From: Zancudomyces culisetae HAW-14-8 | Lineage: Eukaryota; Fungi; Kickxellomycota | Assembly (NCBI GenBank): GCA_052426225.1 | Contig: JBNJNM010000021.1 | Span: forward strand, 186,001-250,000 | Direction of reading: 5' to 3' | DNA length: 64,000 nucleotides | Shown: positions 17,547 to 25,836 of the stretch, piece by piece | How positions within the stretch are numbered: position 1 is the first letter of the stretch | Layout: each line of letters begins with the position of its first letter | Notes under the pieces: generated by a model | What the model was told of the DNA's origin: nothing | Database searches by the model: none | Seen by the model: the letters and a program-made list of their open reading frames with translations, nothing else | Translations under genes and position numbers: made by a program

Positions 17547-18410
17547 TTAGTTTCCCTCGTATTCTCGTATTCTAATCCCAAAAATACCAAAATCGTCCAG
17601 CCAACATACAATGTAGTGATTTTTTTCCCACATAAAATATCTAAATTCGTTAATTCCTATTCCCGTATTCTCTTCTAAAAGTTCTTCAAACTCTCTCTGA
17701 TATATTCCCAGTAATGAAAGACCTTCTTTGATGGATTTACTACTTTTTTGTGCTTCGAAGGCATGATTTTGAGACATATTTTGCCCAGAATTTATGAAAA
17801 CATCGTCCCAAATTTCATAAGCCGATTCAGCTTCTGATCTTTGGAAAGACAACTCCAACTCTCTGCGATCTTTTACAGAATCGACCTCCATATTTTCACA
17901 CCCATCGCTATTTTCTATGCCATCTTCTATTAATAATTCATCCTCCAATCCAAGACCAAAGTCGCTTTCAGCCTCATCGTCCTCATAACCACAATCAATT
18001 TCGTGTTCGGTTGCCAGCTTTTCGAATTTGTCGGAGCTGAGATGTTTAATGCTGTTTATTTTCTCGTTATATATATTCTCGATATCTATAGAATAGAGAC
18101 AAAAAGGTCTAACGACGAGATTGGTTAAAATGGAATCCAGTTCAACACATTTAGGTCGCAGTGATTTATCCAAAAGCTGCCTAATCCTCATGGCTCTGAA
18201 TCTTAGAGCATTGAGCTGCATATTTTCTGGATCAAAAAACATGCCTATTCTTGATACATCAGCTTCGATTTTCTCTAGGATAAGCTCTTTGTCTTCTTCA
18301 TTGTATTTATTGTCAAGCACGGAATCCAAGATTTGGTCTGATTGGAATTTGTTTACAAATTTTATATATTGCTGAATATCGTCTTTTCGATTTAAAAGTG
18401 AGGCCCACAT
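17547..18410 (-). CDS. Hypothetical acidic protein (287 aa)
   Basis: Long uninterrupted ATG ORF with protein-like composition; no family recognised. Confidence 0.7.
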   Translation of the reverse strand: MWASLLNRKDDIQQYIKFVNKFQSDQILDSVLDNKYNEEDKELILEKIEADVSRIGMFFDPENMQLNALRFRAMRIRQLLDKSLRPKCVELDSILTNLVVRPFCLYSIDIENIYNEKINSIKHLSSDKFEKLATEHEIDCGYEDDEAESDFGLGLEDELLIEDGIENSDGCENMEVDSVKDRRELELSFQRSEAESAYEIWDDVFINSGQNMSQNHAFEAQKSSKSIKEGLSLLGIYQREFEELLEENTGIGINEFRYFMWEKNHYIVCWLDDFGIFGIRIREYEGN

Positions 18411-18766: not shown

Positions 18767-19660
18767 TCAACAAGTGATGGTACGATCGGCAAACTTAGGA
18801 GTAAGATCAGCATTGAGAATACCAAAGCTTCCTTCTACATTAAATGGATCGAATCTTGCTTCATGCTTCCATGGCTCATCGTGTCCTGAAAAATAGATAT
18901 AGTCCATGTTTCGTGCTCTAGCTCCACACACAAATGCTTGCAAATAAGCAAATGCACTATCTGGATCGGCTACTGCATCTCGTATCGAGTCGCCATCAGA
19001 TGGCCATCCAGTTTGTCCAACTACCACCATTTTTCCATTAGATCTTGCTGTGAGACCGTCTAAGCTTGTCAATAGAGAGTTTGCAGATGTTACGGCATCT
19101 TGGCCTTGCCAGAAGGGAAAGCCATTGGCCATTACAAAGTCAACCTCACTCATCACCTCTGGGGTATAGTTGAAGTGCTTTTCGGCAGCTGTTACACTAA
19201 CGTTTCCATATCCATCTTTCTGCAAAATATCCTTTGTTTTCTTCAGCTTTTCAGCTATTTGAGCTGGGGTTTGCGTTCCATCAGAGATTGGATCGTTTCC
19301 TACCACCACAGACAGGACATTATCATTAAGGTCATATTTTTTTGCCAATGTATCAAGCGTGTCCAGCTCTTTTTGGAATGTGGCATCATCACTTCCAACC
19401 CACATTCCCAGATTTACCTTCATCTCTGTTCCCTGTATGGCCTCTAGTATTAAGTCACCTTGGTCACAATCAACGAGACTGTATATTCTGAGTATACTTG
19501 TGGTATCCTTCAACGCGCTGATGTCGCTCTTGATATCATCTAGGGTTGGGCAGGAGCCATCACTTCTTTTTGGGTTATATGTAAGTCCGCACAGACTACT
19601 CTGTGCACTGGCACTAAAGGCCATGGCCAAAAGAGAAACAAATACTTTGACGCTTAACAT
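18767..19660 (-). CDS. Secreted GH17 (Bgl2-like beta-1,3-glucanase fold) protein, catalytic Glu residues substituted
   Basis: Signal peptide MLSVKVFVSLLAMAFSASA; GLTYNP..DGSC, LRIYSLVDC, LGMWV, VVVGND, VMANGFPFW, GQTGWPSDG, DEPWK, VEGSFGIL. Confidence 0.92.
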   Translation of the reverse strand: MLSVKVFVSLLAMAFSASAQSSLCGLTYNPKRSDGSCPTLDDIKSDISALKDTTSILRIYSLVDCDQGDLILEAIQGTEMKVNLGMWVGSDDATFQKELDTLDTLAKKYDLNDNVLSVVVGNDPISDGTQTPAQIAEKLKKTKDILQKDGYGNVSVTAAEKHFNYTPEVMSEVDFVMANGFPFWQGQDAVTSANSLLTSLDGLTARSNGKMVVVGQTGWPSDGDSIRDAVADPDSAFAYLQAFVCGARARNMDYIYFSGHDEPWKHEARFDPFNVEGSFGILNADLTPKFADRTITC

Positions 19661-20399
19661 ATTGAAAATGTTTAAAATATTGACAGTTTTAAATCACTAT
19701 AGATAATCTAAAAGGTAATAGTGCTGACTAAACATTTTTATGGTTCTCTGATCAACGGTATTTATATGATTGCTTTCATTTACCAAGCGTCCTTTTTTGA
19801 CCTTTTTATTTTTTTAATGCTTATAAAAGCAACTAACACATCACTACCAGCTGCACCAGTAAAATAATTCTCACCAATAGCCAGGCACATTTGTCTCAAG
19901 ACTATTATATCAATAATACTCCAGTTTCATAGTAGCTGATTTTATTACTTTAGGACTTAGTTTGTTAACAATTAAACATTATAGATATCGTTGCAAATAA
20001 CAAACCTTGACAGTGAAATGTTTCAAAAACTTAAAAAGGCTTGCTTTGATTCTCCTTCTTGTATACTAAGGTTGGCGAGAAGCTGTATTTAGAAATGTAT
20101 ACTGCTTGATTGGTGTTACTTTAATATAGCGATTTAGATATTTTTTATGCCCCTAAAAGCTCAAACTGCCAATGATCAAAGCTGTTACAACTTGATATCT
20201 TTTTTGCACATACTCTAAGAGTTTTCTCTTACTTTTTACGGAGAAAATCAACATAAAAAACACTAATGATCTGGTGAGCTTTGGTTTCTTACCCAATTTG
20301 GATTCAAAAAAAAGTGATAAATAGACAAATGCGGGAGCAAAATTTGATGTGTTGAACATCACGATATGTAAGAGTATGTCTGTGTTTATATTTATATTC

Positions 20400-20429
20400 A
20401 TGTTTATGTTTATGTTTATGTTTATGTTT
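20400..20429 (+). repeat. (ATGTTT)5 microsatellite
   Basis: Direct tandem hexamer repeat. Confidence 0.85.
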
Positions 20430-21681
20430 CATACGAATACTGGACCCACGTTATGGTTTTACAGTAATATTACATTTAAGTATCTATGTAGTAGTATCTG
20501 TATATACAGCTGAGAAACAACTGTCCTATGTGACACACCACAAATACCCAACACTACTAATCCATTTTCGAAACTTATTTAAAACAAAGCTAAATGTAAA
20601 TCTTATCGAATTATATCCAAACACAAAATTTTGGAGTCGATTTCCACATAACAATTAGTTTTCAAGGGATTTTGTGGAGAAATACCACACTCTTCTAATA
20701 AATTCAAATAGCGCACCGTTTCGACTTTTTTTTAATGGTGTTTCATTAGGTTGAAACCCAGTTGAGGACTTTCGGATGGGGTTAAAAATAGATTTTGCAA
20801 AGAATGATAACTTGACATCCATATCGGTGCTACTTCCCCTCAGCAATGCCTTTGAGTATTTCTTAACTGGAGTTTACCCCATTCTGGCTTTTAAAAAGAT
20901 GTACTCTTAAAAGAAAGTTTTGTGTGCTTTTATTGTTCTTTTATCTTTTATCTATTGTATTTTTTTTTTCATGTAAAAAATCAAAAAAACAGGCGATTCG
21001 AATGCAAATAGTGAGTAGTATTCAGGCACAGGTCTAGACTAATGCTCAAATACGAGTACAACAATACACTGATCTGCCTCTATTGCTTCTTGAGTGGTTA
21101 ACTTAACACCTTTTATGTAGTGTACGCGGGGGGAGGGGGATTCGTGAAATACTGAGGCTGGTTCTGTGGCGTGTTAATTCTTTTTTTGATGCAATATAAA
21201 ACAGATCAAACAACATTGGCGGTATTTTCAAAGTTGCCATTTTTGAGTGCGTGTCGGCTATTGGTTAAAGCAGAGCCGCTTAAATAATCGCCGTCAAGTC
21301 TTGCCTGATTTTATGCAAATTTTAAATTCGGATCAATATCGATTCTGATACGATGCTCAATCCTGCCTAGGAGCGGAAGTAAGCCCTTCTCTGATCTTTA
21401 TCAGCCATCATTTCGGGAAGAAAAATATTCGTTGTGGCGTATACTACCTAGTACATTACACTTTACCATATATGTATTTTTTTTTGCGAAATACAACAAC
21501 TATTTGCAAATCAGAGTGGTACGAACAAAAAAAACAGAATAAATTTTTTTATCCACTCTAAATTTATTTGCCATTCATTTTTTTTCTTTTGGCTTTCTGA
21601 AGTATAAATCAAAACGAAAACGATAAAGCCCAAACTTGTAAGAAAATTCAGGGAATAATCAGCCTAGAAAAAGCACATAAA

Positions 21682-22547
21682 ATGTATACAGTAGCCAATC
21701 TTACACCAGTTGCAGTTGCAAGAACTATTGATCACGCCTTGCTGCGACCAGATATGACCACCGACGAGGTGGTTGAGGGATGCAAGCTATGCATGAAATA
21801 CCATGCATTTAGCGTTTGTGTAAGACCTTGCGATGTGAAGTTAGCAGCAGACGTCTTAAAGGGTAGCGATGTTGCTGTATGCACTGTGATTTCTTTTCCT
21901 CATGGAACCTCTTCAACTGCTGGAAAAGTTGCCGAATCTCTTCAAGCACTTGAGGATGGTGCCGTAGAGCTCGATATGGTATGTACTTTTTTTATTTATT
22001 GTCGATGTACCCTCTAGAGATTGAGTATTCTCTCTTAGCATATGTTTTTTTTTTGCTTACTCTTGTTATCGATTATGCTTGGATGTTATCTTAGGTTATT
22101 AATATTGGGTATCTGAAATCAGGAAAGTATGATCAAGTTGAAGATGACATTAGACAAGTAGTTTCAGCAGCCAAGAAGAAAAATCCATCAGTTTTGGTTA
22201 AAGTCATATTCGAGTGCTGCCTCCTCACAAGCGAGGAGATCCGCAAGGCATGTGAGCTATCTTCAAGTGCTGGTGCTGACTTTGTGAAGACGTCAACAGG
22301 CTTTTCTACCGGTGGTGCAAAGATTCCCGATTTGAAACTGATGCGTGAATCATGTCCTGAAAGTGTACAAGTTAAGGCTTCGGGAGGAATTAGAAACCTG
22401 GATTATCTTATCGAATGCTTGAATGTTGGATGTACACGTATTGGTTGCTCTGGTACGAAACCGATTGTTGAGGAGTTGATTGCCAGACAGGCAAATCCTG
22501 CGCATAAAGTTGAACCTACAGCTCAGAGCAGCGCAGGCGACTATTAA
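21682..22547 (+). CDS. deoC: Deoxyribose-phosphate aldolase (DERA), 2 exons (21682-21978, 22095-22547)
   Basis: IDHALLRP, VCTVISFPHG, ELDM|VINIG across intron 21979-22094, VKVIFEC, ADFVKTSTGF (Schiff-base Lys), VKASGGIR, C-terminal Tyr. Confidence 0.96.
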
Positions 22548-24270
22548 CTCGACTCATGTTGTTATTGAATGCCTGTTACTCGTCTGACCGTTTTGTTTTT
22601 TTATATATGTACCGGTCATGGTTGCGCTGTACTTGTTACCCACAGCAATCATATTTTTGATTAAACCGATTAGTCCTATTATTAATACAACTATCTTTTA
22701 ACATGAATTTATTCCCTATTTTTGCATTTCATGGTTACTAGCTTTTTTTATTTTTTTTTGATAGAAATGGACGGAATAAAGATAAAATAGAGTTACTGAA
22801 GAAAACATGATGATGATAAAGTGCTTTGAGACATAAAAGATGTAGCCTGGGTAGTGTGGTTCGTACAAAATGAATGTACTAGCAAGATATTGAGCGTGAA
22901 GTGACTTCCACACCATTACATGTCTCTTTCTTGGCGTATTTTTTGGGAGGGATCTTGCAGAAGCCGGGAGAGTGAGGAGGTGTAAATTTTTGAGCTCTTG
23001 CTGTAGTATTTGAGTATATTTGAGTATATTTGAGGGTGTTATTTTTGCATCACAATATAATAGAGTGATGTATCACATTTGATAGGGAGAACGGGCTATA
23101 TACTTTTGCATGTCCAAAGTTTTTTTCTTAGTTTTTCACAAAAGTTGGAACTTTTTTTTGTGATTTGCAAACGAAAAAAGTTTGGAACGAAAACCAATGT
23201 TGGAGTGAAACCCAAATAAAAAGCCAATTGGAATGATTTTTCATTCTGCAACTTCAGAAGCTTGCTGACATTAGAGTGGCCAAAGTTGGTTGAAAAATAC
23301 ACTGTTTCTGCAGCCCATAAAATCTTTCACCAATTGATAAAAACTATTTAAAATGTGTGTAGTGAAAGGTGGGGAGAAGAAAGATAAGTGATGGGTGATG
23401 GGTGGTGGGTGGTGGGTAATGAGAAGGGGGGGGGGGAGGAGAAAAAGAGGTAAAAACCAAGACATACATGCTGGATGCGATATCTTTTTTTACAACTGAC
23501 AAGGAGCTTAGAAGCAGTATAGACTTGTTTCCTGAAGCTTTGCATTAAATAGATTCTTGCACAAAGTATGAAACTAAAATAATAAACAAAAATCATGAGA
23601 CTGGTATCATAGGTAATAAAAGAACAATCGTATCGTATTAAAAGTAGCGAATACCTTTATTATCTTTTTTGGATAAATGTGAGTAAATAAAGAAATGTAG
23701 GAATACACAAAGTAAAACAAGCGCACACAAAAAATTCCAAACAAGGAATTTCTTGCCTATCTCTTTCAATTTACCTTTTGATAATAGAATAACCACTACA
23801 GTGGTAATTCAGGGTTGTTTTGTCTTTGTGGGTAAGGTCTGAAATAGTCAAACATCCGGTAAAACATTTGCAAAAAAACTCGTAAAATGATTGAATGAAT
23901 TATGGGATAAAGATTGTCTGAAAAGCTATTTGCTTTTTGAGCTACTCACTAATTCATACCTGTATATGTTCTGACACCAATAAAAATGAAATGGTGTGGG
24001 TAACAAAGGAATTGTATCTGTAGAGACGTAAACGACAAGATATGCAACGCTGTTGCAAGATGAGACATATTTCTGCAGTTTGTGTATGTTTTGCTTTAGC
24101 TGGTTTTGGTTTATTGAAAACTAGCTGTGCAAAGCCTAATGAAAAAATTGGTATTAAAAAACTGCCAACGAAAGTTATATAAATACTGGAAGGTTTTTCT
24201 TGTGAAAAAAAACCAAAGATATCGAACTTTGTTGAAAATTATCAACTTCATCATATCAAATATATTAAAG

Positions 24271-25836
24271 ATGAAGGTAGCACTAAGCATTTCATTAGCC
24301 ACACTCCTCACATTTGCTGCAGCTGATCAAAATGTAGGTGGGCTGACATATAATCCTCGAAATAATGACGGCTCGTGCCCAACAATGGAAAAGATTCAAA
24401 ATGATTTGACTTTACTTGAAAAAAATGCTGATAGTCTTAGAATTTACAGTTTAGTCGACTGTGGTGTTGGTGAGATGATACTAGATGCAGTAGAGGGTAC
24501 TGATTGGAATCTGGATTTAGGTTTGTGGGTAAGCAATAATGAAGACGAGTTTAATGCAGAGCTGGATGAGTTGGTGAGGTTATCATCGAAGCCTAGCTTT
24601 GCAGATAATGTGTCGTCTGTAGTGGTCGGAAATGATGCTATAAGCAGAGGTGAGCAAACAGGTGAGGATATTGCCGCAAAAATACGAAGAGTCAGGGATG
24701 AGCTGGCTGGTGTAGATAAACCAAAACGGGTCACTTCCGCAGAATTATCACAGAACTACAGCCCTGCAGTAATTGCCGAAGCTGACTACGTCATGATGAA
24801 TGCTTTTCCACTGTGGAATGGGTATACTGTACATGATGCAATCTGTTCTATATATGCTGGGTTCCAACAGCTTCAAGGAAGCGCTGGTGGTAAAGAAATT
24901 GTGCTGGGCCAAACAGGATGGCCAACCTCAGGAAGCGATATAGGTATATCGGTACCAAGTGTTGACACAGCATTCCAATATATTCAGGAGTACGTCTGTA
25001 CATGCAGAAATCTGGGAATAAAGTGTTACTACTTTACCGCAATTGACTCTGATTGGAAGGCTGGTTCACACGATCCATTTGTCGTGGAGGCACATTTTGG
25101 GCTCTATTATAACAATAATACACCCAAATTTGCACAGGAAGATTGGTTTGATTGTAGGAATGTAGATACTTCGTGCGCTCCCAATATTGAGAATCCACCT
25201 TGCAACGCTCCTGACGTCATCAAGGCAGGTAAATTTACACCTGGATCAAATTTAGTCGAATGTAATCCTGGGTCAGGAAGTACTGATGTAGTTATTCCTG
25301 AAACCACTGATGTAGTTGTTCCTGAAACCACTGATGTAGTTGTTCCTGAAACCACTGATGTAGTTGTTTCTGAAACCAGCGATGTAGTTGTTCCTGAAAC
25401 CAGCGATGTGGTTATTACAGAAACCACCGACATGACTTCGGAAGAAACTATCCTAGAAACCACACTAGAAACAAATGTAACTACAACCGAGGAAATAACA
25501 CTCGCAGAAACAACAGATGAAACTATCTTGGAAACTGTTGATGTAACAAGTGAAGAAATCACTAATGTTACAACTGAGGAAACTGTTGATGTTACAAGCG
25601 AGGAAACTGTTGATGTAACAAGCGAGGAAACTGTTGATGTAACAAGTGAAGAAATCACTAATGTAACAAGCGAGGAATCTACTGATACAACTGTAGAAGA
25701 TATTGTTGACATATTCACAGAGGAGGCATCCTTGGAATCCACCGAAGCAGCTGGCTCAGACACCCTTTTGAGCGAAGTTACAACTGATGTAATAGATGTT
25801 GGTCCTGAAACAGTCGTTGCAGATATGGCAAGATAA
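24271..25836 (+). CDS. Secreted GH17 protein with Cys-rich linker and acidic Thr/Glu/Val repeat tail; catalytic Glu residues substituted
   Basis: Likely true start ATG 24271 (signal peptide MKVALSISLATLLTFAAA); GLTYNP..DGSC, LRIYSLVDC, VVVGND, VMMNAFPLW, GQTGWPTSG, VEAHFGLY. Confidence 0.92.
   Translation: MKVALSISLATLLTFAAADQNVGGLTYNPRNNDGSCPTMEKIQNDLTLLEKNADSLRIYSLVDCGVGEMILDAVEGTDWNLDLGLWVSNNEDEFNAELDELVRLSSKPSFADNVSSVVVGNDAISRGEQTGEDIAAKIRRVRDELAGVDKPKRVTSAELSQNYSPAVIAEADYVMMNAFPLWNGYTVHDAICSIYAGFQQLQGSAGGKEIVLGQTGWPTSGSDIGISVPSVDTAFQYIQEYVCTCRNLGIKCYYFTAIDSDWKAGSHDPFVVEAHFGLYYNNNTPKFAQEDWFDCRNVDTSCAPNIENPPCNAPDVIKAGKFTPGSNLVECNPGSGSTDVVIPETTDVVVPETTDVVVPETTDVVVSETSDVVVPETSDVVITETTDMTSEETILETTLETNVTTTEEITLAETTDETILETVDVTSEEITNVTTEETVDVTSEETVDVTSEETVDVTSEEITNVTSEESTDTTVEDIVDIFTEEASLESTEAAGSDTLLSEVTTDVIDVGPETVVADMAR
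25281..25680 (+). repeat. Coding 24-nt tandem repeats (TDVVVPET-type then ETVDVTSE-type units)
   Basis: About 6 near-copies of ACTGATGTAGTTGTTCCTGAAACC from 25281; several GAAACTGTTGATGTAACAAGCGAG-like units at about 25530-25680. Confidence 0.9.

Follow-up and report, generated by a model that had tools for sequence, protein, structure and literature searches.

Two divergently oriented, putatively secreted GH17-fold genes without catalytic glutamates in Zancudomyces culisetae: likely pseudoenzymes and predicted glucan binders

Zancudomyces culisetae lives in the gut of mosquito larvae, and Harpellales attach inside the guts of mosquito and black-fly larvae. A stretch of 64,000 nucleotides from strain HAW-14-8 (GenBank assembly GCA_052426225.1, contig JBNJNM010000021.1, forward-strand positions 186,001 to 250,000; hereafter the window) carries two genes, here called A and B, that encode proteins of the glycoside hydrolase family 17 (GH17) fold in which both catalytic glutamates are replaced. 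Are these proteins still enzymes, and if not, what could they be kept for? Here, we describe an analysis of the pair from sequence, structure prediction, and comparative data. The interpretation of A and B as pseudoenzymes is well supported by these data, and their biological role is put forward as a hypothesis. The reading that we consider probable is that a Bgt17A-type beta-1,3-glucanosyltransferase gave rise to both as putatively secreted pseudoenzymes that keep the GH17 fold, are predicted to bind glucan, and may serve as a coat on wall glucan.

The closest solved protein is RmBgt17A of Rhizomucor miehei (structure 4wtp; phmmer, gene A, E=1.9e-45), in which Glu99 is the proton donor and Glu189 the nucleophile (PMC11005184). 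In the phmmer alignment to 4wtp, Asp stands opposite the Glu of 'GSE' and Gln opposite the Glu of 'SETGWP', the latter being the position at which the active-site mutant 4wtr carries Ala. Both A and B have Asp at the proton-donor position and Gln at the nucleophile position (codons in Table 1), and neither has the catalytic Glu at the end of beta-4 (proton donor) or of beta-7 (nucleophile). The replacements extend to the acceptor (+1/+2) site, which in RmBgt17A is made up of Tyr102, Trp157, and Glu158, each of whose Ala mutants abolishes transglycosylation (PMC11005184). Two of this triad are replaced in both proteins (the +1 platform Tyr102 by Ser; the +2 acceptor contact Glu158 by Gln in A and Asn in B), and Trp157, a -1/+1 contact, is alone retained. 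The canonical comparison set (six Bgt17A-like Kickxellomycotina sequences and Dispira) has the RmBgt17A residue at all five positions. The donor-side platform (-1 to -3) is present in A and B, with Tyr (at Phe38), Trp65, Asn152, Phe154, and Trp157, followed by Phe230, Lys (at Arg238), and Glu242; also present are the four Cys that are invariant across all eight GH17 paralogs of the genome. Judged from the aligned residues, degradation affects the catalytic chemistry and the acceptor side of the cleft, and the glucan-holding half is retained, in A as in B. A sequence-level screen for compensating carboxylates found no acidic residue jointly gained by A and B where relatives are non-acidic.

The predicted fold is intact. 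The AlphaFold2 model of A (105-sequence alignment) has a mean predicted local distance difference test score (pLDDT) of 95.3 and a predicted template modelling score of 0.90. In a Foldseek search, run with the A model, 4wtr and 4wtp came top (template modelling score 0.91 by target, root mean square deviation 1.7 A, 269 columns, 32% identity), with other GH17 structures next. The model of B residues 1-345 has a mean pLDDT of 87.8, and residues 21-300, the barrel, lie mostly at 87-99. In these models, A and B are intact (beta/alpha)8 TIM barrels of clan GH-A. The two proteins are 42% identical over 290 residues, and both score above the cut-off of 28.2 bits for PF00332, the Pfam GH17 family (A, 40.7 bits; B, 51.7 bits). 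Both N-termini are hydrophobic with a small-residue, cleavage-like site and were taken by eye as putative signal peptides; that of A lies outside the alignment with mature RmBgt17A and has the lowest pLDDT in the model (66-69). No hydrophobic C-terminus of the glycosylphosphatidylinositol (GPI) type was seen on inspection of the A and B sequences.

An earlier note, made from the letters of the window, had claimed that each paralog lacks the two catalytic Glu, and the codons read as it said (19294-19292 and 19015-19013 in A; 24634-24636 and 24910-24912 in B). It had also called the proteins intact, with conserved Cys and groove aromatics, and this is borne out by the open reading frames (ORFs), by the four invariant Cys and the aromatics, and by the confident folds; compensating carboxylates in a structural model, which it had named as refuting, were looked for here by the sequence screen. 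Its account was too narrow in two respects. Both Glu are gone, but Tyr102 and Glu158 are replaced as well; and the degenerate pair at this locus is real, but the story is wider and older, as Smittium species carry degenerate GH17s too.

How unusual such a double loss is was examined across the family. Word-index protein searches returned almost only own-species sequences or alleles and low-complexity tails and were no guide to distribution; therefore, an exhaustive HMMER search was made with an A+B profile against a database of 50%-identity representatives (4010 matches at E<=0.001), and the best 150 matches were examined after alignment to the family hidden Markov model. Among these, once the degenerate group is set aside, Glu stands at the nucleophile site in 147/147 relatives and at the proton-donor site in 145/147. 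Further degenerate GH17s of other Harpellales may sit inside the 50%-identity clusters. Within the Z. culisetae genome (assembly of 27 Mb in 25 contigs), GH17 genes number eight, and the six besides A and B are all canonical (G[SN]E and E[TS]G[WF]P). The double loss in two paralogs is not chance. As an aside, two distant relatives, P0113 and P0079, are without the proton-donor Glu and retain the nucleophile; one (GSN) comes from Plasmopara halstedii and bears a ricin B lectin domain annotation, and the other (SSG) is 992 aa long.

Besides the NCBI copies of A and B (P0001 and P0003), the degenerate sequences near the top of the best 150 matches all come from other Harpellales, namely Smittium culicis and S. 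simulii (Table 1), and these further degenerate GH17s are new here. Not one of the seven degenerate sequences, A and B included, has Glu99, Tyr102, or Glu158, and the beta-1 Asn is replaced by Thr or Ser in all of them. P0052 and P0054 represent one locus in two S. culicis assemblies (by gene order, with an Erv26 gene upstream), and P0014 and P0161, 92% identical, are an allelic or orthologous pair across the same two. Over the GH17 domain, the ratio of nonsynonymous to synonymous substitution rates (dN/dS) is 0.059 for P0014 versus P0161 (dS 0.56) and 0.35 for P0054 versus P0052, and because of these values the dead S. culicis domains are clearly maintained by purifying selection. In the precomputed Pfam matches, the S. 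simulii gene appears under PF00332, and the S. culicis members are absent or scarcely detected. In a gene-order look-up, the DeoC/DERA gene that lies between A and B was not found beside the Smittium degenerate genes, so orthology to A or B is unsupported by gene order.

The present Z. culisetae assembly is ~1% divergent from GCA_001969505.1, and both ORFs are intact in both isolates. Between these isolates, the gene B domain differs by 2 synonymous and 0 nonsynonymous changes (protein 100% identical; small numbers). Between A and B, synonymous sites are saturated, and dN/dS is for that reason uninformative.

The codons suggest an order of loss. The donor-site codon is GAA in canonical genes, GAT (Asp) in A, B, and S. 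simulii P0010, and TAT (Tyr) or AAT (Asn) in S. culicis. Since TAT and AAT are one step from GAT and two from GAA, the route would have run via Asp. At the nucleophile site, the codon is CAA in A, B, P0020, and P0052, CAG in P0054, and GAG (Glu) in P0010, and the GGA/GGC of P0014/P0161 lies nearer to GAA (one step) than to CAA (two steps); parsimony on the maximum-likelihood topology (5 versus 6 codon steps) favours a Glu nucleophile in the Smittium ancestor. This suggests separate losses of the nucleophile, with Gln taking its place once in Zancudomyces and once in the P0020 group, and Gly in P0014. The pattern as a whole suggests that the proton donor went first (Glu to Asp) and the nucleophile later and more than once, twice to the isosteric amide.

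The trees place A and B together. A 60-row quick tree joins them with a Shimodaira-Hasegawa-like approximate likelihood ratio test (SH-aLRT) value of 95 and unites the seven degenerate sequences in one clade (92) that adjoins the canonical Kickxellomycotina group; in a 36-row tree made without the four functional columns, A+B is recovered at 87/93 (ultrafast bootstrap/SH-aLRT). A and B also have identical codons for the donor (GAT), the nucleophile (CAA), and the beta-1 Asn-to-Thr change (ACA). At the Tyr102 position, Ser is encoded by TCT in A, by AGC in B, and by AGT in S. culicis, and the common Ser is therefore not clean evidence for common descent. Inactivation before the A/B duplication, as the earlier note had proposed, is favoured by the sister position in both trees and the identical codons, but an approximately unbiased (AU) test does not reject separation of A from B (p=0.13, delta lnL 7.6). 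A single ancient, Harpellales-wide origin of degenerate GH17s is plausible on these alignments.

The two genes differ in what follows the barrel. A ends at the conserved C-terminal Cys of the GH17 domain, and such bare 297-aa domains occur among the degenerate members in A and P0020. B runs from a signal-like N-terminus through the GH17-fold domain into a Cys-containing linker and an acidic repeat tail; the post-domain region (linker and repeats, 222 aa) has a net charge of ~-53 and 25% Asp plus Glu (D+E), and no Pfam family matched the tail above cut-off. Copy number in its repeat arrays differs between this assembly and GCA_001969505.1 (one array shorter, one longer), and the total stays 521 aa. 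The tails of degenerate P0014, P0052, and P0054 are acidic too (19-33% D+E), and that of S. simulii P0010 is Thr-rich and mildly acidic (10% D+E), versus Ser/Thr-rich tails in the canonical paralogs (46-66% Ser plus Thr). Several Smittium degenerate genes have very long acidic or Lys/Asp/Glu-rich tails of up to 968 aa.

Table 1. Positions of the features discussed; positions without a prefix are those of the window
Feature	Position	Strand	Basis or remark
Gene A	18767..19660	-	Uninterrupted ORF, 297 aa; single GH17-fold domain, no tail
Gene A putative signal peptide, ~residues 1-20	19601..19660	-	Hydrophobic N-terminus, Ala-x-Ala-like 'SASAQS' end
Gene A Asp123 (GAT), proton-donor position (RmBgt17A Glu99)	19292..19294	-	Codon read and alignment
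Gene A Ser126 (TCT), +1 platform position (RmBgt17A Tyr102)	19283..19285	-	
Gene A Gln185 (CAA), +2 acceptor-binding position (RmBgt17A Glu158)	19106..19108	-	
Gene A Gln216 (CAA), nucleophile position (RmBgt17A Glu189)	19013..19015	-	Codon read and alignment
Gene B	24271..25836	+	ATG 24271 to stop 25836; 521 aa; same model as NCBI P0003
Gene B GH17-fold domain, ~residues 21-296	24331..25158	+	Identity to A and AlphaFold2 pLDDT
Gene B Asp122 (GAT), proton-donor position (RmBgt17A Glu99)	24634..24636	+	
Gene B Ser125 (AGC), Tyr102 position	24643..24645	+	
Gene B Asn183 (AAT), Glu158 position	24817..24819	+	
Gene B Gln214 (CAA), nucleophile position (RmBgt17A Glu189)	24910..24912	+	
Gene B linker, three extra Cys, predicted disordered	25159..25281	+	pLDDT <50, residues 311-345
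Gene B acidic Thr/Glu/Val/Asp repeat tail	25282..25833	+	Two arrays of 24-bp units
Gene B 24-bp repeat arrays	25282-25427 and 25530-25677	+	
S. culicis P0020, P0052, P0054			Donor-site motif GNY; nucleophile motif GQIGWP
S. culicis P0014 and allele P0161			Donor-site motif GLN; nucleophile motif TGIGWP
S. simulii P0010			Donor-site motif GSD; nucleophile motif GETGWP (Glu retained)
S. culicis degenerate GH17 loci	L019:10001-12907, L021:6001-7733, L022:6001-7203, L023:6001-7242, L024:4518-5411		
S. simulii degenerate GH17 locus	L018:10001-12329		
DeoC/DERA-type aldolase gene	21682-22547		Two exons, ORFs 21682-22017 and 22194-22547
Acidic 287-aa ORF adjoining gene A	17547-18410		Called as a gene in the NCBI assembly
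Canonical GH17 paralogs C23a/C23b	C23:244831-245670 and C23:385441-386247		
Canonical GH17 paralog C7	C7:42366-43241		
FKS-type beta-1,3-glucan synthase genes (PF02364)	C13:1209340-1211823, C8:1078964-1081450, C23:584543-586945		

A and B lie in divergent orientation, 4.6 kb apart. Gene A is 99% identical to the NCBI Z. culisetae model P0001 (297 aa), and gene B is 91% identical to P0003 (521 aa), the difference consisting of repeat indels. The exons of the intervening DeoC/DERA gene, scanned one by one, each match PF01791 weakly, and the NCBI model is a 249-aa DeoC protein. The acidic ORF on the other side of gene A has no Pfam family and differs between isolates by 2 nonsynonymous changes and 1 synonymous change. 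Among the canonical GH17 paralogs, C23a and C23b lie on the same contig, 140 kb apart, with a domain identity of 91%, a dS of 0.36, and a dN/dS of 0.17, and are a recent duplication. The C7 paralog has a cationic Arg/Thr/Ser-rich tail (net ~+11) with no GPI-like signal; a hydrophobic GPI-like C-terminal stretch occurs only in the C15 paralog.

Under the reading proposed above, A and B would neither hydrolyse nor transfer glucan and would dock on beta-1,3-glucan chains via the retained half of the cleft. The uncharged, isosteric Gln at the nucleophile position may keep a hydrogen bond to the -1 sugar, by analogy with substrate-trapping mutants. The product of gene A would be a free soluble binder and that of gene B the same module on a long polyanionic stalk, and in the larval gut the likeliest role of both would be as a coat or organiser of the glucan in the fungus's own wall; the six canonical paralogs presumably supply the actual wall-remodelling activity. 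Both would belong to a wider Harpellales set of degenerate GH17s in which loss probably began with Glu to Asp at the donor and selection would have kept the proteins since. The fungus presumably makes beta-1,3-glucan, since three FKS-type genes are present (Table 1). In Aedes larvae, live yeast is lysed by a beta-1,3-glucanase of the gut, an effect competed away by an excess of glucan (PMC4805253); the major digestive glucanase is a GH16 enzyme, and a catalytically dead GH16 member is, judging from its sequence, the host's glucan-binding immune protein (PMC6403176). A self-made glucan coat would be an attractive role because the fungus presumably makes glucan and its habitat contains a lytic beta-1,3-glucanase.

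Several observations weigh against this reading. Because the +1/+2 half of the cleft is degraded, the glucan affinity of A and B could be low. The S. culicis relatives are also without Trp157 and Asn152, and two of them are without Trp65; the function selected in the wider group therefore need not be glucan binding. The earlier note had named monophyly and dN/dS across related genomes as checks, and each came out divided. The degenerate sequences form one clade in both trees, but in the 36-row tree this seven-member clade has a support of 32/64, and a tree that groups the Smittium degenerate sequences with the canonical ones, leaving A and B outside, is not rejected by an AU test (p=0.44). The Smittium degenerate proteins also have higher scores with the canonical paralogs of Z. 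culisetae than with A or B. With weak branches, that p value, and these scores, long-branch attraction or convergent or parallel decay is possible. The dN/dS values of the two S. culicis pairs point to constraint, but A versus B is saturated, and between the two Z. culisetae isolates gene A has 4 nonsynonymous versus 1 synonymous difference (small numbers), a count compatible with relaxed constraint or diversifying selection.

Other explanations have to be weighed against glucan binding. A and B could be non-catalytic with a ligand other than glucan, either as a protein-binding decoy that soaks up a host factor recognising or inhibiting fungal GH17, in the manner of PsXLP1 of Phytophthora sojae, or as a module with a structural or adhesive task, carried on a charged stalk in the wall, a biofilm, or the holdfast. 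We regard this main rival as unlikely, though deserving of serious attention: the Smittium relatives are under purifying selection (0.06-0.35) despite the loss of most cleft residues, and the strongly acidic tails of B and the three S. culicis members set them apart from the Ser/Thr-rich canonical proteins. An inactive paralogous decoy has a precedent (PMC8960721), and in the gut, adhesion proteins are believed to be important to Harpellales (PMC5954228). What speaks for glucan is that A and B retain nearly the whole donor-side sugar platform, which would be needless for protein-binding or structural use. For the decoy version in particular, we know of no host inhibitor of fungal GH17 in mosquitoes.

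A view of A and B as relics without function, duplicates that are young or decay slowly and have so far escaped disabling mutations, would fit the gene A differences between isolates and the variable repeat copy number of gene B, but is very unlikely given 58% protein divergence and saturated synonymous sites in proteins with full ORFs, four Cys, barrel core, and confident folds, the gene B domain counts between isolates, and the clear purifying selection on the S. culicis relatives. Continued enzyme activity, through Asp123 with another residue or through an altered mechanism or substrate, seems to us highly improbable. Asp does serve as acid/base in some glycosidases, and the -1 to -3 subsites and Glu242 are intact in both proteins. 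As a general point, motif-based pseudoenzyme calls have sometimes been overturned by migrated catalytic residues (PMC10211241). Against this, the nucleophile Glu is invariant in the 147 relatives counted above; the RmBgt17A nucleophile mutant (Glu to Ala, 4wtr) was deposited as an 'active-site mutant' with laminaribiose bound; Tyr102 and Glu158, essential for RmBgt17A transglycosylation, are replaced as well; the sequence screen found no jointly gained acidic residue; and the erosion at the same sites in Smittium (Tyr, Asn, Gly) shows the chemistry to be free of constraint.

A bolder extension of the glucan-coat reading is a lineage-specific, GH17-derived glucan 'shield' of Harpellales against host digestive GH16 beta-1,3-glucanases, and possibly against GH16-derived recognition proteins, in which Glu-to-Gln would have been selected as giving a tight, non-turnover binder; we consider this speculative and rather doubtful. 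If true, such proteins would do for glucan, in an animal gut symbiosis, what LysM and inactive-chitinase effectors do for chitin. For the survival of Harpellales amid larval glucanases, dead glucan-remodelling proteins are a concrete and cheaply testable candidate. The probable series from donor Glu to Asp to Tyr or Asn, followed by repeated nucleophile loss, twice to Gln, would also make a clean natural example of an enzyme becoming a pseudoenzyme.

Compared with known systems, A and B share with RmBgt17A (4wtp, 4wtr, 4wts) the single-domain (beta/alpha)8 barrel and the donor-side platform residues but differ at Glu99, Glu189, Tyr102, and Glu158 (Asp, Gln, Ser, and Gln/Asn), and RmBgt17A's defining chemistry is therefore absent. 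They are homologous to the fungal GH17 transglycosylases (Bgl2/Scw4/Scw10/Bgt and the six paralogs of the same genome), with a putative signal peptide and conserved Cys, and low-complexity tails are often found in proteins of that type too; the canonical proteins, however, keep both catalytic Glu, and their tails are Ser/Thr-rich, not acidic. ZERZAUST of Arabidopsis, a GH17 wall protein termed an 'atypical beta-1,3 glucanase' in the title of its report, differs as a GPI-anchored plant protein of another GH17 branch. GH18 chitinase-like lectins have a glycosidase fold in which the catalytic residues are lost and which is presumably kept as a carbohydrate binder. The insect GH16-derived beta-1,3-glucan-binding proteins (such as Aae GH16.4) are similar in having lost catalytic residues with a binder role thought to be kept. 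Unlike the GH18- and GH16-derived lectins, which have other folds and occur in other organisms, A and B are made by the glucan-bearing fungus itself, and their binding is only predicted. Further effector or decoy parallels are the inactive GH18 chitinase effector MpChi and the LysM effectors. PsXLP1 (GH12) of P. sojae is likewise a dead paralog beside active members in a host-associated eukaryotic microbe (PMC8960721), but it is truncated, binds a host inhibitor protein, and acts in a plant host, whereas A and B are full-length, point-substituted barrels of a fungus whose host is an insect. A review of secreted glycoside hydrolase effectors includes the GH12 decoy PsXLP1 and no inactive GH17 (PMC8960721), a Harpellales comparative-genomics paper has no mention of glucan, glucanase, or GH17 (PMC5954228), and literature text searches turned up no account of a group of GH17 pseudoenzymes in fungi, an absence that is no proof of novelty. 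A and B look like a GH17 variant of the known theme of a glycosidase turned lectin or decoy, previously represented by GH18, GH16, and GH12.

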